Below the pieces are notes generated by a model. That model was not told the DNA's origin and made no database searches. It worked only from the letters and a program-made list of their open reading frames with translations. From Amphiscolops sp. MND2022 (Eukaryota), in the NCBI GenBank assembly GCA_964187785.1, contig OZ076412.1, positions 25,606,001 through 25,670,000 of the forward strand: a DNA stretch of 64,000 nucleotides, given 5' to 3'. Below, one piece after another: positions 10,031 to 40,989 of this stretch. The translations under genes were made by a program, and so were the position numbers. Each line of letters opens with the position of its first letter. Within the stretch, counting starts at the first letter, position 1.

Positions 10031-10650
10031 GAGGCATATCATATAACCTTTCAACACCAAGACCCCATGGGTTTTAACCCCATGTCAAATGACTCTGTGG
10101 TCACAATATTTTGACCCTATGACACCATGAGGCATATCATATAACCCTTTGACCCCATGATCCCATGGGTTTTAACGCCATGTCAAAACACCCTGTGACC
10201 ACAAAAATTTGACCCTATGACGCCATACTGATTCGATATTCTACCCCCATGTTCATTTCAGTGTTGATCTTTGAATTATCAATATTAAACGTGCCTCGGA
10301 AATGTCGCCATTTCCTCTAAAGCCCCGCTGCCCCTTGGGGCCTTTATGTCCCCATCTTGCTAAGTGAGGTCGAACAGGAGCAAAGACATAGCGGGAACGG
10401 AGGACGCGAAGCGATCGTAGTGGAAGCTGGTCTTTGCAACGGTGAGGGCGAGTGTGCATACATCGAATATGACCCCACATTATTTTGCTTTAACTCAAAG
10501 ACCTTGATTTCTTCGTGATTTCGTCACCTATTTTCCATATATTTCCTTTAATTTTTCCATGGGTTCCTTTTTCACGGGTTCATAGGGTGCTCTTGGCCTC
10601 TATGGGGTCAGAGGGTTATTTTCCATAGTGTAATGGGGTCAAAGGGTCAA
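10031..10650. mobile_element. Foldback MITE M1 (GACCCC/GGGGTC arms) carrying core A
   Basis: Left arm has a ~99-bp direct repeat (10031-10226); right arm has the inverted motif. Right end is eroded and there is no clear TSD. Confidence 0.6.
10287..10481 (+). repeat. GC-rich core module A, copy 1
   Basis: ~195-bp sequence CGTGCCTCGG..GCGAAGCGATCGTAGTGG..CCCCACATT, seen 6 times in the window. Confidence 0.9.
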
Positions 10651-11012
10651 AAAACAAAACTCTGATCCAAAGATATCAAAGAAATGCCCTTATGAATTTC
10701 AAAGGATCTTCCTCGACTACATGGTTGAGCATTTGAAAAGAAAATGGTTTTTAACGCTGATAGAACAAAACTCATATGGTTCTCTTTGAAAAAGCCAGAT
10801 GTAAAAGTACAACCAAAGTTAGTCTTGGAGGATGAAAACGTTTCATTGACCTTCGAACCGGTCAAAGATCTTGGTATCGTTTTTGTTTCAACCCCTCTCT
10901 TGGACCCCCTACATTAATAAACGAATACATGATGCCTACGGCTGTTTTATCAATCTCTCAAAGCTTCTCTCAAGTCAGCAAAAAACTTTTGCCTACCAAA
11001 CTTACTTTCAAC

Positions 11013-11535
11013 GGTATAAAACCAGTTTGTAGAAAACCAGTTTGTAGAATCCAGTTGGTAAAAAAGTGAGGTTCGGAGAATTTTTTTCTACAAACTGGAC
11101 TCTACAAATTGGTTCTCTACAAACTGGTTAGGTCCAGTTTGTAGGAAACCAGTTTGTAGAATTCTGGAATTAAAAAAAAACAACGAGATCAATAATGTTG
11201 GAATGATGCAAAGTGTAAAGCGTTCCTCGGATATGTCTCCATTTCCTCTAGTGCCCCGCGGCGGGAACGGAGACCGCGAAGAGATCGCAGTGGGAGCTGG
11301 TCTTTGCGACGATGAGGGCGAGCGTGCATACACCGGATATGACCCACATTTCAGTTTTTAGATCTTATTTCTTTAATCTTAGGCGATGGACCTCTCCGGA
11401 TCTTGTGTGAAGGATATCCAGGTTGTAGAATTTGATGATCCAATTCGTAGAATTCAATAATTCAGTTTGTAGAAAAAAAGTTCTACAAACTAGACCACAT
11501 AGAATTCTACAAACTGGTATTCCACAAACTAGACC
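11013..11535. mobile_element. Foldback MITE M2 (CCAGTTTGTAGAA arms) carrying core A
   Basis: GG..CC termini, inverted arm motif, imperfect flanking duplication TACT(T)TCA. Confidence 0.7.
11217..11350 (+). repeat. Core module A, copy 2 (internal deletion)
   Basis: Same ends as copy 1; ~60 bp deleted at GCGG microhomology. Confidence 0.9.
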
Positions 11536-11642
11536 TACTTCATTTCTTATGAATGGCTCTCAAATCTGGCTCCCAAATTTGACAAATATTGAAAAACTCG
11601 AAAAAATTCAAAGCTATGTTTCCAGGTGGATGTCTCGTAAAA

Positions 11643-11996
11643 GGGTGGCTGTAAATAGGTCGAATTTTTCTGGTCGAAAGGACAAAGGTCCAACCTTTTG
11701 ATCGAATTGCAGGGATCCAATGGAATGCGGTCGCATTTTATCGTATGTGTTGTATGGCTCGGTCGCTTGGCCCCCTTCGCCAAGTAGCAACATTGGGGCA
11801 TGGCCATATGGCACGTCGCTCCGCTTCGCTTCGCTTCGCTCCTGCATTCAGGGCACTAGGGGTATGTGAACATATCTGACTACGTTTTAAAAATTTCGAT
11901 CCGAGTTGTTTCGATCCCATTCAAAAATTTGGTATGTCGACCTGATGACTAACTGTGATTTTCGATCCCGTTCCTTCGACCTATTTCCGCCCACCC
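11643..11996. mobile_element. Foldback MITE M3 carrying core B; 9-bp TSD
   Basis: TIR GGGTGGCTGTAAATAGGTCGAA / TTCGACCTATTTCCGCCCACCC. Flanks CTCGTAAAA and CTCGTAAGA. Confidence 0.8.
11743..11877 (-). repeat. GC-rich core module B, copy 1
   Basis: ~135 bp, near-identical to 32129-32257; contains GCTTCGC repeats. Confidence 0.9.
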
Positions 11997-12117
11997 CTCG
12001 TAAGACATCTTATGAAAGTCGTATGATTCATTCAAATCTATTGCCGATTTAGCTTTTGTTTCAGTCAGCTCTGATTTATTGTACTGACCCGAGTGTACGT
12101 CTTTGATCTAATTCATT

Positions 12118-12601
12118 GGGTCTAATGGAATTAGATCTAACTTTCAGATCCAATTTAGGTCTAACTTTAGGTCTAACTTTCAGATCTAATTTTCTCTAAA
12201 ATACTTAGTCTGGCCCCTTTATGATCTAATATGTGATCTGAAAGCGAAAATAAAATGTGGGGCATGTGCGATGTATGCACGCTCGCCCTCACCGTCGCAA
12301 AGACCAGCTCCCACTACGATCGCTTCGCGATCTCCGTTCCCGCTAGGTCTTTGCTCCTGTTTGACCTCGCTTAGCAAGATGGGAATTTAGGTGGCCCCAA
12401 GGGGCCGCGGGGCACTAGAGGAAATGGTGACATATCCGAGGCACGTTTTAAACTTTATATTACTTTTTAGTTTTAGATCCTCATTGACTTATTGTTTTTC
12501 TCAAATTAGATCAAATTAGAAGTTGATTTTTAGACCTATTATTTAGATCAATTTATTTAGATCTCAGTTTTGACCTCTCTTAGATCTATTTCATTAGACC
12601 T
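12118..12601. mobile_element. Foldback MITE M4 (GATCTAA/TTAGATC arms) carrying core A
   Basis: TIR GGGTCTAATGGAATTAGATCTAA / TTAGATCTATTTCATTAGACCT. TSD not convincing. Confidence 0.7.
12254..12448 (-). repeat. Core module A, copy 3
   Basis: Reverse complement of the copy 1 sequence. Confidence 0.9.
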
Positions 12602-12729
12602 GATTCCACGCACTTCACTCTGACATCATCTTCTTGCACTATATGATGAGTTCAAATTCCAGCTTGAACTTTGATGACCTGTTCGGTGTGAGAAAAGACA
12701 CGTTCAACTGTCAACTTCGTCCCACAACT

Positions 12730-13283
12730 GGTAAATGGTCACTTGGCTTAATGCCATTTGGCTTAAAGTCATTTGGCTTAAAACAATTGGTCACTTGTCT
12801 CAATGTTTTTAAGCTAAGTGTCTCAGGTATTGGTCACAGGTATTAGTCATTTGATTCAAAACCACTAGTTGAAAACACGTGGAAGATTTTGTCGAATTTA
12901 TCTTTATAACGTAGTCAGCGTATTTTTATAACATGTCATATCAAGTACCCCTCGGATATGTCCCCATTTCTTCTAGTGCCCTGCGGCCACTTGCGGCCGC
13001 TTATATTCCCATCTTGCTAAGCGAGGTCGAACAAGAGCAAAGATCTAGCGGGAACGAAGATCGCGAAGTGATCGTAGTGGGAGCTGGTCTTTGCGACGGT
13101 GAGGGCGAGCGTGCATACACCGCATATGCCCCACATTATGATATTTCCGGGAGTTGACATATTTATTCCTCGAGTTGGAATGGAGTTGGCTTAATTTTGT
13201 GGTCACTTGGCTTAAAATTTTTAAGCCTAATGACTCAACGAAAAAATTGAGCCAAATGGTATTAAGCCAAGTGACTGGTAACC
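12730..13283. mobile_element. Foldback MITE M5 (TTGGCTTAA arms) carrying core A; 8-bp TSD
   Basis: TIR GGTAAATGGTCACTTGGCTTAATGCCATTTGGCT / AGCCAAATGGTATTAAGCCAAGTGACTGGTAACC. Flanks CCACAACT and TCACAACT. Confidence 0.8.
12943..13137 (+). repeat. Core module A, copy 4
   Basis: Matches the other copies over the full length. Confidence 0.9.
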
Positions 13284-13330
13284 TCACAACTTACTTCATA
13301 TAACAAAAACCAAACCGATTGCAAACTACC

Positions 13331-13897
13331 TGTACGATCTCTTTTTTTGGCTTCTTCGGATTTTTCTTTTTTTTTTATTGTAGTTCCAGCTTTTTTCTAG
13401 AAAAAGTTAGTTCTCTGTTCTTACAATGTATTCAGCTTCCCTTTTCTACGCGTTGGGTTCGGTTGATGGTGTAGAAGACTTTGTCGATCGTAGAATTTTG
13501 ATATTTTTCTTCAGAAACAGAGAAAAACGAGTTAAGTTGATGATTTTGTTCTAGATTTAAATTAGAGCAAATACAATATTCAACTGAAGTTATATTCAAC
13601 TTCTCGCAAGCAAGTCTCTCGGTTGGTGTGTCAGTAATTTTCCTTCTTGCAATCTATAATTTTGGCACTTCCTGTTTCCCGTTTGTTTGAAGGAAGTGGT
13701 GATCAATATTTATAAAATGCCGCACCAAATATGGTAAAACATGATTATTATGAGAGTTTAAATATTTGATGATTGGTAATAAATTGCTTATTTTGCTGGT
13801 CAAGTTCGATAATCTCTTGGGTGATGACCTTTCCTTGTTGGGTAAGTTCCATCAACGATGGCCTTTTTCAGGTCAATGGTAACATGGATATGTTACA
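13331..13897 (-). repeat. 3' LTR (567 bp)
   Basis: TGTACGATC..ATGTTACA; highly similar to 26267-26630. Confidence 0.95.
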
Positions 13898-14141
13898 CTA
13901 CCCAACTTCAGAAGCTTCCAGTGGGTTTGAAAAATTGACCGGTCGGTATCGTGAAGAAGCAATTTCCAGATTAGGAGTGATCGTTGTGTAGAAAGAAGGA
14001 CGAAAGATGGCGATCCACACGCAGAAGTCCAGGTCAAGGAGAAGGGAGAAAATGAAGAGTCATAGGATATACAATTTGAAAGGGATGATATACAGCTAAA
14101 CAGTCATTGTTTATGATTTTTCAATAGCAGTTGATACATGA

Positions 14142-16486: not shown

Positions 16487-16684
16487 AATTTACAGTGCTG
16501 TGGAAACGTCTTGTGCTTTGCCCAAGAGGGAGAGATTGTAACCTGTTCCTCGAGGCACATATTTTGTGCCACCACTACTACCATTGGGCCCAGTGGAGTA
16601 CGGGCAGATCATTCATGGGTGACGCTGTGTATTCTGACAGGCATTCTCGTGCTTTTACTGGTGGTGCGCATGATGCGACGGTAG
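16463..16684 (+). CDS. Small Cys-rich single-pass membrane protein (73 aa), antisense in the LTR element
   Basis: Cys-rich N-terminus with an NVT sequon, TM-like WVTLCILTGILVLLLVV, basic RMMRR tail. Confidence 0.4.
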   Translation: MNCRNVTHNLQCCGNVLCFAQEGEIVTCSSRHIFCATTTTIGPSGVRADHSWVTLCILTGILVLLLVVRMMRR

Positions 16685-16972
16685 AATGTGACTGTCGATG
16701 TTCCAGGAATGAGGTGTGATTCCTCCAGTGGAAGAACTGTCTCTTCAGCCCTGTTGTTTTGCTCTGGTTGCGTTTTTTTTGTTTATTGATTACTTTGATC
16801 AGGATTACATGTTTTTATCAAATACCAGTTAGTTGTTAGCGTAAGAAAGAGCGGATAATAATTAAAGTCTCAACGGTTTAATTTGTTTTTTTTGCGAAAT
16901 ACTTTTAGTGATGATGAAGCAAGATAATTCATTGGAAAATTATCTAGTTGCGTGTTTGAAGCATGTTAAGTT

Positions 16973-17482: not shown

Positions 17483-17512
17483 GGAGGGGATGATTCGCTC
17501 TCCTACACTCCT

Positions 17513-19627: not shown

Positions 19628-22600
19628 TCATTCTACCGCTTCTAAAGTTTTTCTATTAGCTTCCAATTGTGAAGACAAAAGTGCTCTTCGAGCAGCTCTA
19701 GCTTGATCACCTAGAGTTCGCGCCATTTTGTCATCATCAGAGAACCAAGACACCGTGTGTGATGTCGGTGTTGCCGTTGGTGACGGAACGCGAGGATGAA
19801 TTCGCGCATGTAGTCTAGGTCGCTGTGTTTCTGATTGCACATCAGGTTGCTCAAAGAGACGTTCCAAATTAAAGTCTGTTGTGTTGTCTCTTGGAGCGTT
19901 TGGTTCTCTTCTAGTGAGCGCCAATGCTGGTTGTACTATTGGAAATAGTAGCGTGGTTGTCACTTCATTTTGTGGTTCACTGTCCTGCAGGTTGAGTGTT
20001 TCAACGTTTGTGTGATGTTCATTCAACAGCTGTGGCAATTCATTGTCGAATAGACCTGGTTAACTCCGAAATTGACTTAGGGATGGATCAGGTTTGAATT
20101 CGGAAGGATGAAGTCTCGGCAAATCTTCAACGGTATATTGTGGTTTTATTGGTCTAATATGGAGTCTTTGAACGCATTGAGTGAATGGCGGTCCTACCTT
20201 TCGAATGATATAATTCGATTTCGTGAGAACCTGCTCGACTCGGTAGAGAGGCAGCCATGACTGCACTGTTTTAGACATAGTGCTAGACTGATCAGTGAGC
20301 AACGGGTTCAAAAGCAAGCAGTATTCGTGTTTTTTCAACGGTTGAGCTTCCGCTTTTTGATCATAGTAGTTTCGGTAACGATGATATGAGTTCAAAATGC
20401 GAGATTTTGTTTCGCAAAACTGCTGAACAAGAGTGTCTTGCAAGTCATTCACAAAGTCGCTCGATGGTTGAGACGAGTTTACATGTTTACTGAATCTCGA
20501 ATCAATGGGTTTGGAGGGATCTCGGCCATGATTTATTGAACTTGGCGTGGTACCGATTGAGACATGGTAAGATGTGTTGTGTACAAACGTTGCAATATCC
20601 ACAAACTTATGCCAGTTAGACCATGCACTGGTTGAGTTAATCTTCAAAATCCGTTTGAATGCACTATGTGCTCTCTCAACTACACCAACAACTTGTGCGT
20701 GTTTCAAAGATGCATGATTTAATTTATTTTCTAGCATGTTTGTCAACTCGTGCATTAGCTTGGATGTGGAACCTGTACCTAAATCTGCTAGAATAGTTTT
20801 AGGTATATAACTGTGTTTCAGAAATATGGAAACTAGCGCTTTTGCTACATTCTCTGCGCTGATGCTAGACAGCGGCACCGCGAACAGGTATTTCGAAAAG
20901 ACGTCGATTCCTGTTAGTGCGTATTTGTATACCGGTGCAATGAATTGACCAACGAGATCAATCTGCATCAAATCTCCGGGGAAGGTATGATCAGATGCTA
21001 ACGATTCTAGAGGTGGTCGCAACCTTTTCTGCTGAATGTTTTTCGTTTGCAAACAAGTTGAGCAGTTTTTCACATAGTTGAGCAAATATTCCGTGAAGCT
21101 TGGAAAATAGAAACGTTTTCGAAATTCGTATACTATTTTATTGATGCCCAGATGATCACTAGTTGGGGAATTGTTTAGTCTGTATAAAATTTCGGATCGA
21201 AGATGCTTTGGAACACAGTATTGTAAATGCGAGACAACTCCAACGTCGTTGAAAAACTTTCTGTAGAAGATACCATTTTCGAGTACCAGGCGACTGCGGT
21301 GTTTTGCATACTTCTTGATTTCTTGGGTTTCGTAGGTTATGTCAATGTCCAAGTTTTCTTCTAGCCATTTACGAACTTTGCGCAGTGCAGGGTCTTTCAA
21401 TTGTTCTGCTTTCAGGTTTAAGGTTGTGGCATGTGCAGAGATCTCAAAATCATTTAGTGGATCAGGTTCGTAGAGTGCGTTGTTTTCTGCTCTTGTTAAA
21501 CTTGTGTATTCCCAGTCGCACATGCTTTCTTTTTCACGAATAAAATTCGTAAGCTCGGGGAATTTTTCTTCTATTCCTGAAATTTTGTTCAAAATTTTCT
21601 CATATTCCTCATGGGTAGAGTTTTTATCCAAGGTTGTGTTGTTGAATTGAAGCTCGATTATTGAGATATCTGGTGTTTTGGCTGTCATCGAAACTTTTAT
21701 CTCTCAGATTGGTAATGAATCCGTTAGTCCGAGCTGTAGCGTTGCTCCTGGTTCTGTTTCCATGCGTGAAAGAAAGTCTGCGGCTGCATTTTCAATTGTG
21801 ATTCATTAAAGGTTTTTGAACCGAAAGAAACTGGTGCGTACTTTCTCGTTTTTCATTCTGCCGTCTTGTCAATGTAGTCCTCTATCATGAGTACAAAACC
21901 ACTACAATGGTAGCTAACATCGCAAAGGATAACGTACTGTTGATTTGGTTATGCCCAACGCAATGTTGTTGTCGTTGCTTTTAAAAGATCAGTTTTAATT
22001 TGCTTAAAATTTTCGATATGGTCATCTTGAACTCTGAAATCGACATCCTTCGCATAAATTTGTAAAAGGGTAGCAGCTTCTCGTTTAACTTTGGTATGAA
22101 ATTTCGAAAAAATTGTGTGAAGCTGATGAGTCTTTTGACTTGTTTCACCGTTTGTGGTATTTTGACTTTGTCTAGAAACTTTTCTATTTTCTTCGTTTCG
22201 GGAGTAATTCCCTCAGATGTGATCGTATTGCCTAAGAAAGAACTTTGCGACATTCCAAACTGACATTTTTCTGGTGAAAGCTTGAGTCCGGAACTTCGGA
22301 TACTAGCGAAAATTTTGGTCAGGTTTTCTTTGATTTCCGCAAAGTTTTCTGCTCCACTCCCACTGTCGTCCATGAATTGGGTGCAGAGGTTAGCCGCAAG
22401 ACATTGATCCAAGTATTTTCGTACAAAGGCACTAAATCCCGTAACGGATTTACTCAAACCTTGTGCCAAAACTTTGTATGCGTATGTCCTGGATACGAAA
22501 TTGAATGCAAGCAATTGTACCGAGAGCGAGTCTGCCATTTGAACGCAGTGGTACGCTTGCGAACAATCTAATTTTGTGAACAATTTCTTTCCCGCAAAAT

Positions 22601-24400
22601 GGTTAACAGCGTCCGTCATATTGGAAATAGGAAAATTGTGGTTGGCATATTCATGTCGCAGCAAATGATTTATTTTTCTGAGGTCATGCAAAATTCGCAA
22701 TCTTCCCGACGGCTTTCGCTGAGCGAAAATTGGGCTACTGTACTTCGAATTTGTTAGTGTTGTTATATTGACGTAGTATTGCAAAAGAGCCAATTCAACC
22801 ATCATTTCGTCTCGGAGGTGTATTGGCGTTGGCGGACTTTGCATATAAACTGCATTCGAGTGTTTGGGCGTCAATTTAATTTTCATTTCGGTGTTATAAC
22901 CAACGTCGAACCTGTGTTTGGCAAAAGTATCTTCAAATTCGATGAGAAGGTGTTCGAGCTCGCTGATTTCATCTGATGTCAAAACCGAATTCTTCCAATC
23001 GAACTTAGATAGAAATTCGTTCCGATCCGCTTCATTTTGTTTAGGGTTTTTTTGTTCGAGTTGCTGGAAATGGTGAAGTTGTTCATAAATTTTACGCGGT
23101 TTTGGTGTCAATTGTTCAGGATTATCACACGTTTCAGGTGTGGGAAACCATAAATTTTTGTAGTCAGGTTTCGGTTTTTGTGGTTGAAGTACTTTACCTT
23201 TGTCTTCACATTGGACTAGTTGGTTTATTTCCTGAAATAGCTCACCTTTCATAGCTTCATCAAGTGTCAAAGTTTCTGCCGGTATAGGTATCAACGATTA
23301 AGCTTCATCGAGAGTTAAAATCTGGAACTTTGCGACTGGTTGATTTTTTGAGACAGTGACTACATAATCTGTTAAATTCAAAGCCAGAATTTGTAATTCA
23401 TTATTACTTGCTATTGTTGTTAGACAAGATGACAAGCAAAGATCATGTTTCCGTTCAAACTGTACATCAGGTAAAATCATTCCCGTCATTCCTTCGAATT
23501 TTTTATCGTTTCGAGAAAATTTCAAATTTAAAACTTCTTGAGAATTAGGCTTGATCGTGACTTTTTGAGTTGTTTCAGCAACAATTTTCGTTTTGGAGTG
23601 AATTTTCCGCCTGGTTCCAGCTTTTTTTATTTCGTTCAGTTATAAAGTTATATCAGGAAACTTGAGTAACTTTTCACCTGGAAACATTCCTACTGGATAT
23701 TTTGAAAAAAAAAGAGTTCCCAAAATAACACTATTCATTGTTGGGAGAATCATGAAAGTTTCTTCAAATTCGCTGTCATGAATAAAAAATTTCAAAACGA
23801 TTTCGCCGAGTACTGGTAATGATTTGCCAGAGGCCATCCGAACTGTTTTATATTTCGCATTTTTGACCAATGTTTTCATTACGTCCACATCCGTCATCAG
23901 CTCTGTATAAAGAGACTCTGGGATCGCACTAGAGCACGCACCTGTATCTATCAACGAGCGTCGCCGAAGTTTTGAGCTAAACTTCAAGGGTACATCAAGT
24001 AAGGGGTACATCACCTTCTAACGGAATTACTGCATCCAAAAGATTTCTAGAATCTTCTGAATCAAAAGTGTCTTGCAGTTCATGAACAATTTCGTTAAGT
24101 TGCGATAATGGGATGTTTTGTTTCACTTTTTTCTTCGTAAATTGTCTACATTCTTCAGCTAGATCTTTCGAAATTTTTGCTTTCAAATTTTTATCGTATT
24201 GACCTTCTTCGAATTGTTGGTCCACATGCTTTAAAGCACCCTGTAAGGCTAACTCTTTTGTTTTCAATAGATGTCGCAGGGTATCATTTTTATTTAATTT
24301 TTTGGATTTTATATTCAAGTTTTCTAGATCTTTTTCTAAAGAACGTTTATCTGCTAAGTATGGTGATGAGGATGATTTTGGGAAAGACCTGTTTTTCTAG
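19628..24400 (-). pseudogene. pol: pol (PR, RT, partly deleted RNase H, integrase), frameshifted
   Basis: LIDTGACSS protease; RT RKPSGRLRILHDLRKIN, LDCSQAYH, QFMDD; CDVS RNase H; integrase H..CSTC, QIDLVG, ADLG, VERAH. Confidence 0.95.
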
Positions 24401-24410
24401 TGTGGAGGAT

Positions 24411-26173: not shown

Positions 26174-26250
26174 GTAGTGTTGAGGAAGAGCCAGTTTTGT
26201 CGTGTTCTTCTAGCTATCGTTGATTGGCTTAGTGCTGAGTGTTTGTCTCC

Positions 26251-28137: not shown

Positions 28138-28199
28138 ATTTGAGCCTTTGTCGGTTTGAAGCGGCCCGGGGCGAATAACCTGCTTGCTTTGAATCAAAA

Positions 28200-29383: not shown

Positions 29384-31790
29384 AAGGAGAATATCATTTT
29401 TACAGATCAACATTTGCGGCTTGAGTAATCACAGTAAAATTGCAATTGATGCATATCTTGAAAAACATAAACCAGATGTGGTTTTTTTGAATGAAACCAA
29501 ACAATAATTTCCTGATAATGCCTTCACCAATTATACAACTCTCGGTAGTACTCCAAAGAAATTGACAAGCGGGGTTGCGTTGTTGTTTCGTAACGATGTG
29601 GCGTATGCTCAAATAGAGATATTAGAGACCAAAAACAGTGACAATATTGTGACTGCAGCGGCAGCTAATGTCCGCGGCCTAAAATTACTAACTACGACTG
29701 CTTATGTAAAACTTGATGACAAAGGTGAACAAATAGAACTCATAAAAAGACTTGAAGCCTGTAAAGTCTACGCAGATACAAATCACATGGAAGGTGTTCT
29801 TTACTTTGGCGACTGCAACGCCAAACACTTATACTGGGGTGATCAGACGTGCAATGCACTTGGAAATGAGTTTATCAGCCTCGTACCAACTTATACTATT
29901 TTGAACGATGGCCAACCTACTTTCCTCTCAATCAACGGCCAAAGTGTAATAGATCTTTGCATTTGCTATGGAAACTTCATTAACCAATACAAATGCTCGC
30001 TTACAACCGATGAAGATACGGAACTGTTCACTGGAGCACCCTCCAGGGGCCACCTGCCTGTGCTAGTTTCTCTTGTCGAGTCAAAAAGTGGTTATTTCAA
30101 AGAGAAGCCGTGGATTGAGAAAGCAAGGTGGGATGACTGGCGCGCACATCTAGAAACTGAAATGCTCGACTGGACAACTTCAGATAATGCTCTGGAATTG
30201 TGGGAATTTTTCAAGAACTCTTTAAAAGAGGCCACACTACTTTTCATTCCTTTCAAAAACGTTACGCAACATAGTAAACCATTTTGGTGCACCGAGTTAA
30301 CTATAGCCAGTAAAGAGCTCAGGCAGCTGCGTCGGAACTTCCGATACAAGTCCAACCATGCAAATTTAGAAAAACTAGCAGAAGCGAAAGAATTATTCAA
30401 ACAACTACTCAGTGAAAAGGCGTCTGCCTGGATGAAAGACTACTTGAAGGCACTGGGACACAAGCGAGGCAATGAAGTTTGGGTATCGTACAAGAAACTG
30501 TTCGCTGGAAGCAGTTCCCAAGTGGATCTCATCAAGAATAAACACGGGAAACTGCTGCTCTCAAAAAAAGATATTGCTCAAGAATTCCAAGAGACGTTCT
30601 CCAAAGGAAAACATCTGGAAACTCTCAACTTCGACGAGTCAATGTCAAGGACAGTCTCAGGTTATCTGGACTCGTTTGATGATGCTTCCGAGCAGGCTTC
30701 GGAAAATTTTTAATGAACCTTTCACAATTGAAGAACTAAACGAAGCAATGAAACAATCTTCTGATACAAACTCCTTCGACCCTGACGGGTTCCACGTCAA
30801 AATGATCAAAAACTTGGGAGTCAATGCGAAAACTCTTCTCTTGGAGATTTTTATTACATGTTGGGAACATGCTGTATGGCCCTGGTCTTTATCACGAATT
30901 GTGTTTATCAGGAAGCCTAACAAAGACAGGTATGACGACTGTTCCAGCTATCGACCGCTATCTATTTCTAGTCATTTTAGAAAACTTTTTGAGCGTATGC
31001 TGTGCAACAGATTAAACTATTTCACGGGAACCGAGAAGATTCTGGCGGACGAACAAGAAGGTTTCAGAAGTAAAAGAAACACAGTCAGATCTCTGTACAG
31101 GCTACATCTTAATCTAGAATGTTCTAAATTAATGAAAACACCGACCGCTCTACTCAACATTGACCTCGAAAAGGCCTTTGACATCGTGTGGATAGATGGC
31201 CTACTTCACAAACTCAGACATTACAAAATAAACGGTAAAATGTTCTGCATTTTACGAATTTTTTTGAAGAACCGAGAAGCATTCATTGAGTGATCTGACT
31301 TCCGTTCATCTGTGTTCAAAATAGACAATGGTGTCCCTCAGGGAAGTGTCTTGTCACCACTTTTGTTTGTAATATTTTTGAACGATTTTCTGAGTGAGGA
31401 ACCGTGTCACTACAAGTTCGCTGACGACAGTGCTATTTTAATTCTAGGCTGCAATGAAAATGATATCTCCCAAAAACTCGAACAGTCTTGCAGGGGGATA
31501 GAACAGTGGTGCCGCAAATGGAGAATGGGAGTGAATGGCTCCAAGACAGAATTGATAGTTTTCAATGTGGAAAGAAACAACATAACTGCGCCGAGCCTGA
31601 ACAATGAAGCGTGCGCTATCACAAAAGCTACAAAATCTCTCGGTCTCCTGGTTGATGATAACCTGTGTTACAAAGACCACGCCGAAAAAACCTGTAACAA
31701 AGCTAAACGCAGCTGGGATAATGCTTCTAGAATTTTGAGATGCAAACGGAGCTTGTCAATTCCAACGTTAATTTTCCTCTATTTATATCC
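29370..31790 (+). pseudogene. LINE ORF2 (APE endonuclease and RT), frameshifted
   Basis: INICGL, LNETK, GDCNAKH, SVIDL, QEGFR, DLEKAFD, GVPQGSVLSP, FADD. C-terminal CICGK..YHYFFCCP at ~40430-40480. Confidence 0.9.
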
Positions 31791-32011
31791 TAGAATTATG
31801 AGAATCCTATAAATATTATTTAGGTAGTTTTCCCCACCTAAGATGGGATCATATACGGTGTATGCACGCTCGCCCTCACCGTCGCAAAGACCAGCTCCCA
31901 CTACGATCGCCTCGCGATCTCCGTTCCCGCTAGGTCTTTGCTCCTGTTCGACCTCGCTTAGCAAGATGGGAACATAAGCGGCCCCAATGGGCCGCGGGGC
32001 ATTAGAGGAAA

Positions 32012-32358
32012 GGGTCAGGGACATTTCGTCACCAGCCATTTGGGCGACAATATGGCGTCGGTCACATGGGCGACAAAAGTGTCGACCAAATGGGTTGATC
32101 AAATATGTGATATATTTGAAGAGGTTAGCATATTTGTTTTATGGCTCGGTCGCTTCGCTCCCTTCGCCAAGTAGCAACATTGAGGTATGGCCATATGGCA
32201 CGTCGCTCCGCTTCGCTTCGCTCCTGCATTTAGGGCACTAGGGGTATGTGAACATATTTGGCCATTTAGTCTACGGGACATTTGGGCGACATTATTGTCG
32301 CCGAAATGGGCTGAAATTTTTGTCGCCCAAATGGCTGGTGACGAAACGTCCCTGCCCC
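32012..32358. mobile_element. Foldback MITE M6 inserted into core A, carrying core B; 8-bp TSD
   Basis: TIR GGGTCAGGGACATTTCGTCACCAGCCATTTGGGCGACA and its inverse; perfect AGAGGAAA flanks (32004-32011, 32359-32366). Confidence 0.85.
32129..32257 (-). repeat. Core module B, copy 2
   Basis: Near-identical to 11743-11877. Confidence 0.9.
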
Positions 32359-33047
32359 AGAGGAAATGGGGGGCATATCCGACGGCCAAAAAACATTGTT
32401 ATTTGAAAACGCTAGGTATTTGAAAACATGGATTCGATCTCATTTTCTTTGACCATTTTACTCCGATCTCAGTGACAGATTGCATATTCGCGCAAATTCA
32501 TTCGATCCAAACTCCCACCGCCGTTTGAAAGAAATAGAAGCTCAGTCATGAGAGTCCAGAATCATATCATCAAATCAATCTTTCGACATAGTTTTACTCG
32601 TACCATTAGCATCTGCGAAACGCTGCTAGGACTACCTCTGGACATTTACAATGATGCCATAAAAATCAAATTTGTCATCAAAGTCAAAAGAGCCAATGAC
32701 TTGGTGAGTAATACCCACTCTCTTTTCATCTCCAACCGAAGTAAAGCTGCAGCATTAGAAAGTGGGGAAACGGAAATCGGACTAAAGAAATAGAACTAAT
32801 GGAATTAGGACTAACATGCTCAAAATTTCTTAAACGTTCATGTGAAATAGAACTAATTTCGTATAATCTCAAACAGGAATTACAACTAATTTGTTACGGG
32901 AAATGGAACTAAAAACAGGAATTAGAACTAATTTGTCACGGGAATTGGAACTAAAAAAGTGAGAATAGGACCTGACATGCGGAATGAGACCCAAGGGGAG
33001 AACGGAATAGTATCTAAAGGAATAATATCTAAAATTTTTCAAAGTAT

Positions 33048-33244
33048 AAAACGTGCCTCTGATATTTCCTCATTTCCTCTAGTGACCCGCGGCCCCTTGG
33101 GGCCGCTTATGTTACCATCTTGCTAAGCGAGGTCGAAGAGGAGCAAAGACCTAGCGGGAACGGAGATCGCGAAGCGATCGTAGTGGGAGCTGGTCTTTGC
33201 GACGGTGAGGGCGAGCGTGGATACACCGAATATGCCCCCACATT
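33048..33244 (+). repeat. Core module A, copy 6
   Basis: Full-length match to the other copies. Confidence 0.9.
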
Positions 33245-33575
33245 AGAAGGGGAAAGTACTGAAAATTTTGTGAGTCATTTACGAAACGTAAAGTTTTATT
33301 CTTGAATAAAATGATTTGAGATCTGACTTTTTTAGAAAATCAATGGAAGGAGAAAAATAATGAATGTATCAATTTTTTATTGATCAATTGTATTACGTTA
33401 CTTTTGTACTACTTTCATTGTACTACCACAAAATTTGAATTTTGTACCATGTTTTTATCCGCTTCTGCGTTTTTTTGTTGTAACTTTTTTTATGTTGGAT
33501 GTTTACAGTGGTAGTAGTAGTAGTAAAAGACTCAATTCCTTTTTAAAGGGTGATACGACATCAAAATGTAATGAG

Positions 33576-35714
33576 TTATGATCTACAAAAAGTACTTAGG
33601 CGTTTCAGGTAGAAACTGCATGAGTGATCAATGTTGAAACAATTTGCAGTTTTATCAGCAAGGAACCGATTTATACAAGACTTGAAAATATCAAGAGGCA
33701 TATCAAAAGACACAATTTTCAAATTTATCAGTTCATTTGCTGAACGCGCCGCTCTAATATAGAAATTGTCATTTGTGGAAAATTTGTTGCATTTTGGAAT
33801 GTAGAACAGGCCATTCGATGACGAGCGTGTGCATAGGTTGGATCTCATGATATTGTTGTCTAGGTCCACAGAATTGTTACACAACTTCCATAACAGAATA
33901 ACGTCGTTTTTCACAATTTGGTAGCATATTGGAAGGATGTCAAGATGTATCAGTGCTGAAACAAGAGAAGAAGTTTTATTGATCCAACGTATTACTTTGT
34001 ATTGAAAATTTTCAAGTTGACGAAGCTGGGTTCTAGTTGGACACCATACAGGTGAGCCATACAGTGAAATAGAAAGAATAAGGGATGAATACAAAAACTT
34101 TTTCCTTTTAGAAGATGTAGAAAATGGAATGTTTCTCTTTAGAAAAAAGAATACTCTTTTTGATATTAGGAGCTTAGAATCAACATGTCGTTTCCATGAT
34201 AAGTGGTTAGAGATAATGAAACCAAGGTCATCCATTTCTTCGACAAAGGGAAGAGGATTGCAACCAAACATCAATTGGTCGGATTTGTTTTTGCGACTAA
34301 AATCGATAACTTTACACTTTTTAGGGTGAAAGTCAAGATTGTTCAATTCGCTCCATTCAGAAAGACTATTAATGTCGGCTTGAACTGATTGTGCATTGAA
34401 GTTATTGAAGACCTTAAGATCATCGGCAAAGAGTCGGAATTGGCTGTCTTGTATGCCATCACCAATATCATTTATTAAACATAAAAATAGTAACGGACCC
34501 AACACACTGCCCTGGGGCACACCTGATGTAACAGGTAGGGCCGACGAAATAGATTGATTTATGCGCACACTCTGGAAGCGCCCAAATAGATAAGAGTTGA
34601 ATAATTCTAGAAAATTGCGGTCGAAATAAAATTTTTCAAGTTTTGACAACAACAAATGGTGAGAAACAGAATCAAAGGCCTTTGTGACATGAAAATAAAC
34701 AGCAACGGCATAAGAATCACAATCACAAGAAGCATAAACACTGTCCAGGTAGCTGATTATTTGAGAAACAGTGCTTCTAGATTTCATGAAACCATGTTGT
34801 TCACGTTTAATCATTCGACTAATTCTAGGGTAAATAAAATTAAACAATAATCTCTCAAGGACAAGCGACAGCTTAGGCAGAATACTAATTGGTCTGTAGT
34901 TGGTAATGTCCGAATGATTTCCAAGCTTATGTAGAGGAGTGACAAGTGAAGTTTTCCATTGAGATAGCCAGGTACGGTTCCGTATAATCCAATTAAATAA
35001 ATCAAAAGCAAGAGGGGCGAGGATATCAGAACAGCTACTTAGAACAAATGATGGAATATTGTCAGCACCACATGCACTGGAATCAGGGCATTTTCTCAAC
35101 AGATCTTCAACATCGGAAACAGACAGTTGGAAGTCATCTAGTTTAATCGAGGGGTTATCAAAGGTCTCATGAAACTGATGATCTTCTTTCTCAATGAATA
35201 CAGACGCAAAATAAGAATTGAACTCTGAAGATTTTTCATGATCGCTATTCAGAGCTTTGGTTTTGTGAAACATTACTGAGGGAAGTGTCTTGCCAAATCC
35301 AAGGTTGCGTAACAACTTGAAACACAGCCTAGAAGATGAAAGATCAAACTGATTTACGAACAATTGTTTGTCTAGTTCGATAGAATCAGAAATAGCTGTT
35401 GTAATTTCTTTGAGTTTGGTAGCTTGCAGGAAAGAACTGCACTTTGACAATTTGCGAAGAGTTGTGTCTCTGGTATTTAGAAGATGAATAGTGTGAGAAG
35501 AATAGTATAACGGCAGTGATAGTCGTTTAGCACGTTTAGTTGCAATGGAGCTGTTTAGCGATGAAGATAGAATCAAATACCACTCTTCGGGATATTGACT
35601 GTTTGGGAAATTGTCGAAACTGATCAGATTGAATAAAGGTTGTAAACAACCATTGAATGAAATCACATTGAAGGATGATCTGGAAAAAACATTCTTGTAG
35701 GAGTTTGAAGACAC
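33576..35714 (-). CDS. LINE ORF2 RT and C-terminus (712-aa open portion)
   Basis: NYRPISIL, EQHGF, AFDSVSH, GVPQGSVLGP, FADD. Confidence 0.9.
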   Translation of the reverse strand: MSSNSYKNVFSRSSFNVISFNGCLQPLFNLISFDNFPNSQYPEEWYLILSSSLNSSIATKRAKRLSLPLYYSSHTIHLLNTRDTTLRKLSKCSSFLQATKLKEITTAISDSIELDKQLFVNQFDLSSSRLCFKLLRNLGFGKTLPSVMFHKTKALNSDHEKSSEFNSYFASVFIEKEDHQFHETFDNPSIKLDDFQLSVSDVEDLLRKCPDSSACGADNIPSFVLSSCSDILAPLAFDLFNWIIRNRTWLSQWKTSLVTPLHKLGNHSDITNYRPISILPKLSLVLERLLFNFIYPRISRMIKREQHGFMKSRSTVSQIISYLDSVYASCDCDSYAVAVYFHVTKAFDSVSHHLLLSKLEKFYFDRNFLELFNSYLFGRFQSVRINQSISSALPVTSGVPQGSVLGPLLFLCLINDIGDGIQDSQFRLFADDLKVFNNFNAQSVQADINSLSEWSELNNLDFHPKKCKVIDFSRKNKSDQLMFGCNPLPFVEEMDDLGFIISNHLSWKRHVDSKLLISKRVFFFLKRNIPFSTSSKRKKFLYSSLILSISLYGSPVWCPTRTQLRQLENFQYKVIRWINKTSSLVSALIHLDILPICYQIVKNDVILLWKLCNNSVDLDNNIMRSNLCTRSSSNGLFYIPKCNKFSTNDNFYIRAARSANELINLKIVSFDMPLDIFKSCINRFLADKTANCFNIDHSCSFYLKRLSTFCRS

Positions 35715-36240
35715 AGAGGAAGCGAAATCAAAGTATATAGGTTAGTGATCAGAAAATAGAACAAGGCTAATTGACAGGGCTAAACATTGACTATCACAGA
35801 ACACAAGGTCAAGATTGTTTTGATTTTTATGTGTAGGCTCATGAACCATCTGAACTAGGTCTTTTTCAAGAATAAAGTCAAGGAAATAACGTTCCATTGA
35901 AGAAGTAGAAGAATAGGATTTCCAGTCGACATTTGGGAAGTTGAAATCACCAAGAATGTAGACATTATGGGTACCAGTGTAGCCGAATTGCAGCAAAATA
36001 TCAACAAATTTTTTGTAATAGGCTTCCATACATCGGACTAATTCTGAAATAACCACAGAATATTTAGAAGAGTAGTAGGGAGGATTGTATACCAATATAA
36101 AGAACGAGGGAACATCACTGAGAATTACACAAGCAATGGCGAAACCGAATTCCTCAATAGTAATATCAATATACAGTAAGGGAGAATCATTGACGATTAC
36201 AAGTAGAAACAGCTTTAGTTGTCAATGTTAAACTGTCACA

Positions 36241-36288
36241 ATATGTTTACAAACGTTTTCGACTATGAAAAGTCATCATCAGGCATAA
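36241..36288 (-). ncRNA. Minimal type I hammerhead ribozyme-like motif
   Basis: CUGAUGA-U-GACU[UUUCAU]AGUC-GAAA followed by palindromic AACGUU. Confidence 0.7.
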
Positions 36289-36395
36289 TAATCTGAAAAT
36301 ATAAACAACATGAAAGCACCAAACTAAATGGAGATTTATAAATTTGATAGAACGTAAAAAATGCAATGCGTAGACGTTATAAATCAATTGAACTG

Positions 36396-38898
36396 CTAGA
36401 ACTTCAACGTCAACTGCCTTCTGCGATACTCGTCGCGCTGGTTGAGGGCTGGACGGAACTTCTGAATATATAGCGCTTCAAGAGTCAATAATTTGGAGTC
36501 GGAACGGGCAAAATCAAGAATCTGAGGTTCAGGAAAAGCGGTATTTGGAGAACATTGTGATAAATGTTGGGTTACTGGTGCAGACGATCTCTGATGCTCG
36601 TACATTCTTGTCGATAGATGACGGACAGTTTGTCCGACATAGCTGGCATTACAGCCAGGACAAATTAACTGATACACGACAGAACTACGAAGCATTTTTG
36701 AGAAACTCGACTTCAATGAAGGCAATAACGACTTCAGCTTCCTGGTGGTGAACACTACCTTCACAGGAACAAATGATTCAAGCTTCCGTTTGAAATCATC
36801 AGAGATGCGACCACGATATTGAGTTGAAAACCACAACTTACGTTCTTCGGTTGTATTTTTGGGGCTGTTCGTAACCTCGAGTACAATTTTATCCACCGTG
36901 TCTTTCAAAATGGGGTTGTAAAAACCTTTCGGGTACTGGTTAGCCGTCCAAATCGCTTTGGATGCCTCTATACCTTCATGAAAGTTGTTCCAATTCGATG
37001 TTGCGTTGAAAACACGATGTACATGTCCACTAATGATATTTCTCTTATACCTCATAGGGGCAAGTGCACGAAACGAGAGGGTTGTTCCAGTGTCTGTAGG
37101 TTTTCTATACCACCTTGTTGAAAGTCTGTTACCACTCTGCGACACCACCATATCCAGAAAAGGTATTTCATGATTGAGCGATCTTTCTATCGTGAACTTG
37201 AGGTTCACATGCATTTGGTTGAAATAACCTAGTAAACTGTCAACTTCCGTACTTCGAACTGTTCGGATAATGTCGTCTACATAACGTGCGAAGAGTTTGC
37301 ACCCACTTTTATGATTGAGACAGATGTTGCAACACCATGGATCTTCCTCAGAAAGTGCCCTAAACTCATTCAACGATAAACTGGAGCATTTGCGGTGAAA
37401 CCAGAGGTCACAACTGTCACATTGGATGGAATAACCTCTATAAGTAACTGTTTTATTGCAGATACCACACAAGCAATTAGCATGTTTCGCCATAGTACCC
37501 TGGTCACATTTTAGTCTATTTTCAAAATTTTTCAACCATAAGTTAGCAAGAATAACAGAAAGTGATGCCCCCATGGCCACACCATCTTTCTGGACGAACC
37601 ATTTCCCATCCACCATGAACTTCACGTTTTCACGGCTAATTTCATTAGCTCGTGGAAGGTGTTCTGAGGCATTTTAGGTCTGTGTTCAGATGCATACAGC
37701 TTAGCAAGAGCAAAATCGATAGCTTCGTCAATAGGGACATTCGTATAGAGGCTTTTCACATCAAATGACACAATTTTCTCGTCATCAGATAATACGACAG
37801 TCTCAAGTAGGTGTTTTACTTTCATTGTAGATGTTTCTATGCTGGCGCCAGGTAAATTAACAAAGAAATCCGAGATAAACTGGTTGATGTTAGCGTAACA
37901 AGACCCCGGAAGGGACAATACTGGCCTTAAGGGTATACCATCTTTATGCACTTTTGCTAATCCATACAGACGAGCCGGTTGACTACCAGAACTACGTAAC
38001 TTGTTGTAAACACTCGAACCTAACTGGCCGTGTTTCTTGAGGTATTCCAGTTTCTTGTTAAAGGCGTCCTCCGTTCTCTGTAAAAGATGTTTTTTGCCAC
38101 TTATATCAGTTACCTCCGAAAACTGCTCACCGGTTGTTACATCATTGAGTTTATCAGAATACTGTTGTTTTGTCATTATACAAAAACCGCAACCTTTGTC
38201 AAAAGGAACAGCCATCAGGTCATATTCTTTAAGGAATTTGCAAGTTTTCAAATACGATCTATCCGGTCGTTGGGTGCTAGCTTTCCGAATGTATGACACC
38301 GATAACGCATTGAGGTTGTTAATTGTGCCACTAGTATTTTGAGGGCTATGTTTCACCTGACACATCAATCTGTCCATATCAGCGAGAAAGGACATTTCGT
38401 TGAATTTGTCCAAAACAGGGTGTTTCGGACCACGCGATAGGACATCAAGCACGTAGTTGGGCGGTTTCACATCTGCTAAGACAACTACGTTATCAGATCG
38501 CTCAGCCAACGGCTTGTCCTGATCAACAGCCAGTTTTTTCAATTTTGCACGGTGTTTGTTTCTCAGCAACTTAAAGTTTAGTTTCAAACTTTGTCGTATA
38601 TAGAACGATACAGATACCAAAAGCTTATCCGAAAAAGCAGACGATACTCCTTGTCGGGCACAGCTAAGTTTTTCTTCGGTCTGGTTTCGGGCCAGACGTG
38701 CCTTTGCCAACTCGCTTCTCAGCAATTTTTCTGGAAATCATGAACAATCGTAGGCTCAAAACACCCATTTTCAGGTACGCGGAACTTCAGGAACTTAGGG
38801 ATGATGTCATTTTTTAGACACTCCGATAGAAAGTTAATCCGTGCAACATTGTTAGAGTATTTCGCTACAGCACTTTTGTACCGCGAGAATAAATCCAT
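36396..38898 (-). CDS. PLE RT - GIY-YIG protein with PHD insertion (two 1-nt frameshifts in A-runs)
   Basis: FDVKSLYTNVP, QKDGVAMG, YVDD, IPFLD, WYRKPT, VVYQLICPGCNASYVGQT. PHD at 37320-37469. Confidence 0.9.
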
Positions 38899-38998
38899 TT
38901 CTGTTTTGTACGAATAAGTTTTTCGAATATACAGTAAGGGAGAATCATTGACGATTACAAGTAGAAACAGCTTTAGTTGTCAATGTTAAACTGTCACA

Positions 38999-39046
38999 AT
39001 ATGTTTACAAACGTTTTCGACTATGAAAAGTCATCATCAGGCATAA
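38999..39046 (-). ncRNA. Minimal type I hammerhead ribozyme-like motif (second copy)
   Basis: Identical motif in the pseudo-LTR. Confidence 0.7.
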
Positions 39047-40989
39047 TAATCTGAAAATATAAACAACATGAAAGCACCAAACTAAATGGAGATTTATAAA
39101 TTTGATAGAACGTAAAAAATGCAATGCGTAGACGTTATAAATCAATTGAACTGCTAGAACTTCAACGTCAACTGCCTTCTGCGATACTCGTCGCGCTGGT
39201 TGAGGGCTGGACGGAACTTCTGAATATATAGCGCTTCAAGAGTCAATAATTTGGAGTCGGAACGGGCAAAATCAAGAATCTGAGGTTCAGGAAAAGCGGT
39301 ATTTGGAGAACATTGTGATAAATGTTGGGTTACTGGTGCAGACGATCTCTGATGCTCGTACATTCTTGTCGATAGATGACGGACAGTTTGTCCGACATAG
39401 CTGGCATTACAGCCAGGACAAATTAACTGATACACGACAGAACTACGAAGCATTTTTGAGAAACTCGACTTCAATGAAGGCAATAACGACTTCAGCTTCC
39501 TGGTGGTGAACACTACCTTCACAGGAACAAATGATTCAAGCTTCCGTTTGAAATCATCAGAGATGCGACCACGATATTGAGTAATATCAATACCGTTGAT
39601 TACAATTGAGTAATATCAATTCAGTAATATCAATTGCACGAATTGGAATGTTGGACGAATGGGCAAATAGTAAGCCACCATGTTCACCGCGACTTCTATC
39701 AGTGCGCGCAATAGTACGATAAGAGGAACCAATGAAAACTTCTGAGTCAGTAATTTCATCATGAAGCCATGTTTCCGTAAGAAAAACCAAAGCAACAGAT
39801 TTAGAATTGCACAGATGGACTGAAGTCATACGCTTTTCCATTGGACATATTGATTGACAATTCACCAGCATATTTTAGGAGCACAGCCTCAAGGACAAAA
39901 GCTTCACTCACCTTGTAAACTCCACGCCTTACAATTGAACATGTCGTGATTTTGTCAATTCGATCTACGTAATTCCCATATTTCCGTGCCAAAAGTTGTT
40001 TTAGTCCTATTTCAAGTAGTCCTATTTCCATTAGTTCTAAGGCGGCACTAAAAAATAATTAGTTCTATTTCCATTAGTCCTATTTCAGTTTTGATCATTA
40101 GTCCTATTTCATTAGTCCGAATTCCTGTCTCCCTTAGAAAGTAAGTTGAGTAAATTCAAAAAGTTCCTTGATGACGATACTCGGACAGAATACAACAAGC
40201 ACGAAATAGATGAATTCATAGAACAAAGTTGGATAAAGAGATGGAAGAACATCCAAAACAAAGGCCTCTTGCAACATCTCCCTAACACGCAACCACAGTT
40301 AAACACCTGTTGTCCGTTAACTATTGGAGACTCTTATGTTGTCAATAAAATCTGCGAATTAGTAATTGGGAATTCCTTTGCTTTTGCCGAATATGCCTGG
40401 AACATGTGGAAGTGTGAATCACCAATGTGCATATGTGGAAAGTAAGAAGACAATCCCTATCACTATTTCTTCTGCTGTCCGCACTATAACGAGATACGCC
40501 CAGATATACAGAGCCTAAATTTAATGGAAGCGAATGATTGTCAAAAACTCCGAGATTTCATAATTAATACAAATAAACTGAACTTATAGACTTTATAGAC
40601 TATTGACCTATCATTAACATCCTCCCGCAAATAGGGGTTTTTGTAGAAATTATATATATATATATATTTTTTTTTGGGTGCATCTTATTCTAGTTATGTT
40701 ATGATGAACATAATTCAAGTCTTCTCTGTCTGTCTTTCTGTTTGTCTGAAATCTCTCTGAGTGCTTACCCAATCGTTTAGTTTACCTGGACTTCACTGAA
40801 ACTGTTCAATAAGCCCGAATCGTATAGCGATTATTTGTTATGTAAAACAATTCTTCGCGGTTGATGTTTCATGTTGAACAGGAATCCATTCTTAGGAAGC
40901 TTGAGGATTGGTTACCCGAGGAATTGGAGGAATGTAGGCGAAAATCTTTCCTGCACTTGGAGACTTGGCTGTGAATGTTAGAAACAACT

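Follow-up and report, generated by a model that had tools for sequence, protein, structure and literature searches.

Short DNA transposons with diverse arms and a common GC-rich core in an Amphiscolops genome: evidence for a possible recombining MITE clan

Eight MITEs (miniature inverted-repeat transposable elements), named M1 to M8, lie in a 64,000-nucleotide stretch of Amphiscolops sp. MND2022 DNA (the window; contig OZ076412.1, positions 25,606,001 to 25,670,000), and they raise the question of why elements with such different arms should all enclose a GC-rich core of one of two kinds, A or B. A blastn search of the whole window, with one copy of each core as query, returned exactly six copies of core A and exactly two of core B. 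Every copy sits in a short AT-rich element with G-rich ends and arms of short repeated motifs, and the motif arrays were confirmed to be real in the window sequence, in agreement with an earlier reading made from the sequence alone, without database searches (the sequence-only reading), which had placed six A and two B cores between such arms. We regard it as an evenly balanced proposition that M1 to M8 belong to one large, recombining MITE clan, in which the core is a highly conserved domain that is required or strongly favoured for propagation and that also serves as a site of recombination.

The window corresponds to a part of the 611,803-bp linear contig ctg185629 (~129x coverage) of the ENA metagenome assembly ERZ25074608 (record coordinate = window + 166,058), and 16 further loci were fetched, which brought the total to 342 kb; loci numbered with L are DNA stretches from this assembly. 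A 730-amino acid ORF with a YTH domain matched only proteins of this same assembly. The window DNA is eukaryotic and animal-like, with open reading frames (ORFs) for a long interspersed nuclear element (LINE) endonuclease and reverse transcriptase (RT), a long terminal repeat (LTR)-retrotransposon pol and a Penelope-like element. The M-elements are nested in LINE coding sequence, and for this reason their insertion sites are easily read. Target site duplications (TSDs) could be scored in five elements, namely M1, M3, M5, M6 and M7 (Table 1); the 8-9-bp TSDs reported earlier for the last four stand, and M1 is added to them. The array of MITEs reaches position 40133 because a 6.7-kb Penelope-like insertion splits M7.

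The gene caller behind the public protein collections has called ORFs on core A, for example an 86-amino acid ORF at 31782-32039 (-) of the window. A search with this peptide gave 940 clusters at 90% identity, every one of which derives from ENA and has the core frame, and some of which have 36-102 members, and a profile search of 1.84 billion representatives returned 349 clusters at 50% identity. All but one of these 349 are ORFs of 64-257 amino acids with diverse arm-derived tails, the exception being an unrelated 764-amino acid repeat protein. Core A is thus a repeat of at least a thousand copies, present in a great many sequence contexts and part of no real protein. A protein-coding exon was considered, one frame being open in many copies, yet it was rejected, as the matches in two very large libraries are short ORFs (43-257 amino acids) with arm-derived tails, save the unrelated repeat protein, and stops occur in 2/5 window core A copies. 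The core B ORF gave only six matches, which say little about the abundance of core B, as that frame is rarely called as a gene. Blast matches to core A in the 342 kb number 58 and those to core B 19, at least 15 arm types are present, and the case for many arm types around one shared core, first made from the window, becomes much stronger with this wider sample.

The M8 family, defined by nine loci with an identical 73-amino acid ORF, is 483 bp in length, with copies 97-99% identical. The homology ends at the same bases in 8/8 copies, each flanked by a 9-bp duplication, with one mismatch in two of the eight and one duplication that could be 8 or 9 bp. M3, M4 and M5 recur elsewhere with 87-93% identity over their full length, and further core A families are distinguished by the arm motifs AAGTTCGAA (x1), CAATTTGCCGAA (x2), AAGATCTAA with GGAATAAGATC (x3) and TTTGCCGAAACG (x4); other arm motifs found with core A include GACGTTTCGGCGACA, ACTGGGTAACTAGG and TCGACATAT. 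TSDs of 9 bp flank x2 (TTGCTAACA), x3 (TCGAATTTT) and a second M6 copy (ACTTGGCGC), and TSDs of 8 bp are found in some M5, M6 and M3 copies. Every arm type that could be examined is a genuine multi-copy MITE family, the elements being short, with defined ends, a fixed-length TSD and only short chance ORFs. A strict terminal-repeat/TSD scan recovered only four elements, the ends containing indels.

The ends of nine families follow one plan, in which 9-13 nt of G-rich terminal sequence (such as GGGTGGGCGG, GGGGAAACGG, GGGGACCGC, GGTGGGGTA, GGGGCACGG, GGTGAGGGAC and GGGCTACGTGG) are followed by 2-4 A/T and then by the first family motif. The family motifs are often of the G-N-N-C-G/T-A-A type and are repeated in both orientations, and most differ by only one or two bases (GGTCGAA, GGACTAA, GGTCTAA, GATCGAA, GTTCGAA, GCCGAA and GGCTTAA). 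The shared end plan and the near-identical motifs therefore indicate that the families are one transposon lineage with diverging subterminal repeats, and the sequence-only reading erred in taking the arms as mostly unrelated, since one end architecture is common to all families.

The arms, 100-250 bp in length with scattered motifs, have these motifs in common, yet no long inverted repeat emerges when they are aligned. The true terminal inverted repeats measure about 12-40 nt; left and right arms pair over only 10-22 nt in M8, M3 and M4, and longer arm pairs of 26-61 nt are seen only in some families (x3, M6, M2, M5 and L016). A foldback element of the Drosophila FB type, in which very long inverted arms of tandem repeats are capable of folding back, was rejected, given that pairing between the arms is limited to ~12-40 nt in most families. 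The 9-bp TSD (range 8-11) of Mutator-like and Rehavkus elements is found in M8, M3, M7, x2, x3 and one M6 copy, but not the long terminal inverted repeats, often 100-400 bp, of Mutator-like elements. Merlin elements have an 8-9 bp TSD, GG-starting terminal repeats and an IS1016-like transposase, and the TSD length and GG ends observed here fit this superfamily too. Judged by their ends and duplications, the elements would fit TSD-making non-autonomous DNA transposons of Mutator/Rehavkus-like or Merlin-like type. Of the earlier placement in Mutator/foldback or Merlin, the Mutator- or Merlin-like ends and TSDs are thus retained and the foldback component is dropped. With Mutator-like, Rehavkus and Pack-MULE elements they share the 9-bp TSD, the G-rich termini and an interior that can be foreign DNA, and with Rehavkus, which also has a 9-bp TSD, they share minisatellite-like subterminal repeats (PMC6446971). 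The short terminal inverted repeats set the present elements apart, however, as does the fact that in Mu and Pack-MULEs one terminal-repeat set carries many interiors, whereas here the reverse is observed.

Core A is a non-coding module of ~190-205 bp, central in each element, with a GC content of ~55% versus 29-42% in the arms. Its edges are sharp, with AAAGTATAAAACG at the start and CACATTA at the end in eight or more arm contexts. Three edge versions occur at the 5′ side and four at the 3′ side, some nested in each other and two of the 3′ extensions homologous, and the short core form resembles a truncated derivative of an ancestral module that was longer. In x1-family elements, which occur with two different core 3′ extensions, the final 15 nt of core A (ACACCGGATATGCCC) occur once more ~70 bp downstream (L019 6390-6480; L004 10525-10700; L014 4050-4130); this duplicate brackets an M2-like segment or the class-b extension and looks like a short-homology recombination scar.

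Three perfect palindromes are present in core A (GCGGCCCC..GGGGCCGC, GATCGC-GAA-GCGATC and GCAAAGACC...GGTCTTTGC). The second (e.g. L007 10725-10740) contains GCGAAGC, an unusually stable DNA mini-hairpin motif. Folding of the core is more favourable than that of shuffles, with z-scores of -3.1 (plus strand) and -1.3 (minus strand) as RNA and -2.3 as DNA. Neither core matched an Rfam family, at the gathering threshold or at E <= 5, nor tRNA, 5S or 7SL, and an RNA gene was rejected in view of this lack of an Rfam family or tRNA, compensatory changes being uninformative in copies that decay neutrally. A Helitron or HUH-type nature of the core, for which one would expect a hairpin near the 3′ end, a conserved insertion dinucleotide or target and no TSD, was also rejected, as the hairpins lie 45-160 nt from either edge and the core-flanking sequence is not conserved. 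A literature search with core A sequence strings gave no match. On the opposite strand core B aligns with core A, best over the first 35 nt, with a local alignment score of 51 versus 25 +/- 4.6 (maximum 44) for shuffles, which makes it a distant, inverted relative of core A.

The arms and cores do not stay together as fixed units. Core B in the window and core A at L010 5490-5999, as well as in L011 and L008, lie between M3-type arms (90% identical), and M5-like arms are found around a core B at L009 16426-17575. The flanks of 39 full-length core A copies fall into 18 left and 17 right clusters, and elements with mismatched arms include an M5-type left arm paired with one of x2 type on the right, an x8-type left arm whose right partner is of another type, and a left arm of a new type joined to an M4-type right arm. 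One exchange could be traced directly. L014 and L015 are on different contigs, are 99.2% identical apart from an 810-bp unit (L014 4414-6227 versus L015 5223-6227) and are probably haplotypes of one locus. L015 holds two different MITEs 800 bp apart, with cores P and Q. The additional 810-bp unit of L014 contains a middle core, which has the left flank of Q and its diagnostic bases up to alignment column 179 and, from column 203 on, the bases of P and its right flank. The switch falls in a block of 24 nt that is invariant in the core, and the L014 unit is the product of an unequal crossover there. The mismatched-arm element at L017 4168-5085 has flanking 9-mers that do not match, as expected of a recombinant rather than a transposed unit; a CTGCAGA 7-mer near this element was not counted as a TSD, being offset by 7 nt.

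A comparable situation is known for Galileo, a foldback-like P-superfamily element of Drosophila mojavensis, which likewise has internally repetitive arms, chimeric centre/arm copies and mismatched ends without matching TSDs, and whose chimeric copies have been ascribed to ectopic recombination or conversion (PMC3573991). The Galileo subfamilies, however, can be aligned over their whole length, make 7-bp TSDs and possess a known transposase, whereas here only the centre is shared and the arms are not alignable.

The elements also insert into one another. Five of eight M8 insertions lie inside clan MITEs, one of them by the core A hairpin, one in core B and three in M3-type arms; clan MITEs make up only 4.2% of the locus flanks at distances >3 kb from the anchor, and 6.8% of the sequence in the window, and the binomial probability of such nesting is about 6e-6. 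Many core A ORF tails show M3 or M6 ends within core A. M3-family elements are inserted exactly at the core A edges at L018 ~3465 (3′) and L008 ~9721 (5′). The core/arm junction, where GC-rich sequence changes to AT-rich, is suggested to be a favoured target. Because of this mutual insertion the cores occur in clusters, such as four in a 3-kb stretch of the window and seven in 12 kb of L014, and they therefore lie close enough for unequal exchange.

Core and arms have diverged to the same degree within families. Identities for the left arm, core and right arm are 92%, 94% and 90% in M4 and 91%, 91% and 88% in x8; it follows that copies, once inserted, decay neutrally without being homogenised. 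Single core copies differ from the consensus at 2-11% of sites, with a per-copy decay of 7-10% in old and ~2-4% in young families. The founder cores of eight families, in contrast, judged by the positions where every copy of a family has the same non-consensus base, are off the global consensus at only 2-4 of ~200 sites, nearly all at the two edges, and are about 98-99% identical between families whose arms are not alignable. A near-identical founder core is found in families of old copies (M2 and x1) and of young copies (M8 and x3) alike. The founder cores are thus far more conserved than their surroundings and are shared by 17-18 flank clusters that are not alignable with one another, which is the pattern that defines a highly conserved domain (HCD) in short interspersed elements (SINEs). 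Since founder cores are near-constant and the core and arms of the copies decay equally, the constraint would appear to act on propagating lineages rather than on inserted copies, with the core either selected for propagation or redrawn from a conserved source. This pattern supports the suggestion of the sequence-only reading that the core is a conserved cis element retained through the turnover of arms. Core relationships between families are star-like, with 21 informative sites among 33 sequences, and a PHI-like (pairwise homoplasy index) recombination test on the core alignment is borderline (P = 0.05) on only these 21 informative sites.

The same figures bear on the possibility that the core is functionless, a neutral passenger of common ancestry that looks conserved through recent origin or gene conversion. 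Common ancestry is real, given the single end design and the relatedness of cores A and B, recombination between cores does occur, and a GC-rich core is what biased gene conversion would be expected to yield. Homogenisation of inserted copies, however, should have left the core more similar than the arms within families, which it is not, and a recent origin is hard to reconcile with old and young families sharing nearly the same founder core, or with founder cores so alike between families with unalignable arms. We consider a neutral passenger improbable.

Recopying of the core from one conserved source would likewise keep founders alike. Candidates for the source are a host small-RNA gene and the interior of the autonomous transposon, recopied either as gap-repair filler following excision or by Pack-MULE-like capture. 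The almost constant founder core across families of different ages would follow from this, Pack-MULEs prefer GC-rich fragments, and the more favourable folding of the plus strand than of shuffles (z = -3.1) and the commonest 5′ version of the core, which starts with GTATAAAA and has CCATTTC ~28 nt downstream, in an arrangement that looks like a TATA box and initiator, are also in keeping with it. Ectopic gap-repair filler is, moreover, a published origin of MITE interiors (PMC1562414). Nevertheless, no source copy outside MITEs was found in the 342 kb or among the ORF clusters, Rfam and tRNA searches gave no match, the TATA-like edge is missing from M8, the youngest and most active family, and random template switches should not yield identical edges. 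As such, a conserved source is judged unlikely.

A core that is itself a separate mobile unit, inserting specifically at the centre of palindromic MITEs, could account for its invariably central position, its sharp shared edges (AAAGTATAAAACG and CACATTA) in eight or more unrelated arm contexts and its star-like relationships, as from one master, but is highly unlikely, as the core has no terminal inverted repeats and no TSD or conserved target around it, its edges exist in several nested versions, the sole observed shuffling event is a crossover and not an insertion, none of the 39 full-length copies is a clean solo (the 5/39 without detectable inverted flanks are mismatched-arm or interrupted elements), and arms lacking a core are seen in the core-biased 342 kb only as a truncated half element and a 95-bp fragment, never as an intact pair. 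The homing unit that the sequence-only reading offered as its second option is accordingly not favoured, and neither were the arm-only elements it had proposed to look for encountered intact; inverted flanks, which it had proposed to score around the cores, are detectable in all full-length copies but those five.

In the preferred reading of a recombining clan, M1 to M8 and their relatives would be non-autonomous cut-and-paste MITEs with one end design and a central core A or B. The core is held near-constant in the lineages that found families, with inserted copies left to decay neutrally, and left arm, core and right arm are reshuffled, at least partly by homologous recombination inside the core, an exchange that insertion of elements into one another aids by placing cores side by side. 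The copy number, family structure, TSDs, nesting bias, founder-level conservation, module swaps and one crossover are shown by the sequences, whereas the role of the core is inferred. The core may act as a cis requirement for propagation, for example as a binding platform for a transposase or host factor or as a unique GC-rich anchor, through which repair strands anneal correctly and restore the donor after excision. Such a requirement, together with a role as recombination hub, would explain why every successful arm type carries the core.

Several points weigh against this reading. As recombination in the core exchanges one arm only, it leaves the initial acquisition of a core by a new arm type unexplained. 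The core edges are identical within a few bp in eight or more arm types, a sharpness beyond that expected from simple recombination or deletion. For gap repair any unique GC-rich spacer would do, so that conservation at the level of sequence stays unexplained by this function. Only 2-4 copies per family underlie the comparison of founders, and core A ORFs served as anchors for the 342-kb sample, which is therefore biased towards core-bearing regions. Finally, no transposase domain, such as the MULE-type DDE transposase of autonomous Mutator-like elements, which in Rehavkus comes with a PHD finger, was found among the called genes of 18 loci or the window ORFs, nor in Pfam scans of larger unannotated ORFs, which leaves the search for autonomous elements proposed by the earlier reading without a candidate in this material.

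The closest conceptual parallel is found in the HCD-bearing SINEs, with the CORE, V, Deu/Nin, Ceph, Meta and other domains, which are also modular non-autonomous elements with a conserved central domain in otherwise unrelated families. Nine HCDs are shared by otherwise unrelated SINE families and their conservation has been called 'a major enigma', a recombination hotspot for module exchange being one of three unproven hypotheses (PMC5804259); HCD conservation and the hypotheses are also treated in PMC6887750. The SINEs, however, are class I retroposons, with an RNA-derived head, a body and a LINE tail, and their domains are shared across phyla, whereas the elements described here are class II TSD-making MITEs in one genome with a domain of ~200 bp, likened to HCDs by its organisation. 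A SINE retroposon structure, with a pol III head, a LINE-derived tail and variable TSDs, was not found, there being no tRNA/5S/7SL match, TSDs fixed at 8-9 bp, and terminal inverted repeats. A more doubtful, tentative extension of the clan model is that core A represents a class II counterpart of the SINE HCDs, that is, a cis-acting module needed by every successful arm type, conserved by selection on propagation and acting as a recombination hub for arm exchange. If this is true, L014 and L015 would provide the first direct snapshot of HCD-mediated module exchange, a hypothesis unproven for SINEs.

Two further systems combine MITE ends with notable interiors. MER6/MER6A, a human Tc1/Mariner MITE, carries the SINE V domain in its interior (PMC6887750), but constitutes one family, with TA duplications, formed from Mariner and a V-SINE, while the present system has at least 15 arm types, 9-bp TSDs and a domain without SINE features. 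P-derived MITEs of Anopheles gambiae have interiors unrelated to the master, for which ectopic gap repair was proposed, and include one family with the ends of two subfamilies (PMC1562414); unlike here, no conserved interior shared across families was reported for them. The statement of the sequence-only reading that no description of such an arrangement was known thus holds for the class II carriers, which appear to be new, but not for the concept, for which the SINE HCDs and the V domain in MER6 are close precedents. What appears to be new is an HCD-like domain carried by many class II families within one genome, the extreme contrast between founder cores 98-99% alike and unalignable arms, and the direct observation of a crossover inside the domain.

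The persistence of a near-invariant central domain amid turnover is an acknowledged open question for SINEs (PMC5804259), and the present system represents a DNA-transposon version that is tractable by virtue of its thousands of copies, many arm types, families of which some are young and probably still active, and a fresh recombinant between probable haplotypes. It furthermore separates two questions, namely whether the core is needed for mobility and whether it acts as a recombination hub. Arm-defined MITE 'families' can be mosaics, which matters for repeat annotation.

Table 1. Positions of the MITEs, their target site duplications and core copies, and associated features, in window coordinates unless a locus is named
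Feature	Position	Strand	Description
M1	10032..10663	+	MITE, GACCCC/GGGTCAAAG-type arms; inserted in LINE reverse-transcriptase ORF
M1 TSD	10023-10031 / 10664-10672		GATACAAAG / GATCCAAAG
Core A copy 1, in M1	10283..10482	+	87.6% to reference copy (blastn)
M2	about 11005..11540	+	MITE, CCAGTTTGTAGAA arms, each arm itself palindromic; ends approximate, TSD not scorable
Core A copy 2, in M2	11209..11350	+	Internal deletion of ~62 bp
M3	11643..11996	+	MITE, GGTCGAA/TCGATC arms; ends GGGTGGC... / ...GCCCACCC
M3 TSD			CTCGTAAAA / CTCGTAAGA; 9 bp
Core B copy 1, in M3	11740..11890	+	
M4	12092..12610	-	MITE, GATCTAA/GGTCTAA arms; no scorable TSD
M4 family copies elsewhere	L008 10770-11267; L014 8678-9167		
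Core A copy 3, in M4	12254..12456	-	
M5	12730..13283	+	MITE, TTGGCTTAA arms; ends GGTAAATGG... / ...CTGGTAACC
M5 TSD			CCACAACT / TCACAACT
M5 relative	L003 11130-11694		91% identity
Core A copy 4, in M5	12950..13138	+	
M8	about 31815..32522	-	Truncated copy of the 483-bp TTCGATC-arm family; one arm missing, M6 nested in its core
Core A copy 5, in M8	31829..32011	-	Remainder at 32359-32390, past the M6 insertion
M6	32012..32358	+	MITE, TTGGGCGACA arms; 39-nt terminal inverted repeat (95%)
M6 TSD			AGAGGAAA; exact, 8 bp; M6 inserted within core A of M8
Core B copy 2, in M6	32131..32260	+	
M7	32764..40133	+	MITE, GAACTAA/GGACTAA arms; right arm split off by nested retroelement
M7 TSD	32755-32763 / 40134-40142		TTAGAAAGT; exact, 9 bp
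Core A copy 6, in M7	33040..33256	+	Includes start of class-b 3′ extension
Penelope-like retroelement nested in M7	33300..39990	-	Ends approximate, ~6.7 kb; RT, PHD and GIY-YIG; outside the MITE system

The Penelope-like element in M7 shows a permuted domain order, with the PHD and GIY-YIG ORF (36396-37625) upstream of the RT ORF (33576-35714), and contains perfect 657-bp direct repeats at 36168-36824 and 38926-39582. A short array of GGAATAAGATC-like motifs at 7150-7440 of the window, with a small palindrome at 7383-7428, resembles x3-family arms; it has no GC-rich core and may be a degenerate arm fragment. Further features of the window include an LTR-retrotransposon pol at 20060-23294 (-), with integrase (H2C2 and rve) and RT ORFs, and a 2.37-kb tandem duplication within 41827-46600 (41827-44198 versus 44231-46600; 99.8% identical). 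In the fetched locus L003 (1-7500 and 13221-18334), a run of ORFs without Pfam matches, apart from one weak match to a Pox_A32-type ATPase, may be Polinton-like, and separately an ORF for a Monjiviricetes-type fusion glycoprotein adjoins integrase and RT ORFs and may belong to an env-bearing LTR element. A dense cluster of a separate short repeat family occupies positions 47000-64000 of the window, with units containing AAAGGGTCCCCC...TTTTCGGCATTGTGAGA in both orientations; these share 61-89% identity and are unrelated to cores A and B.

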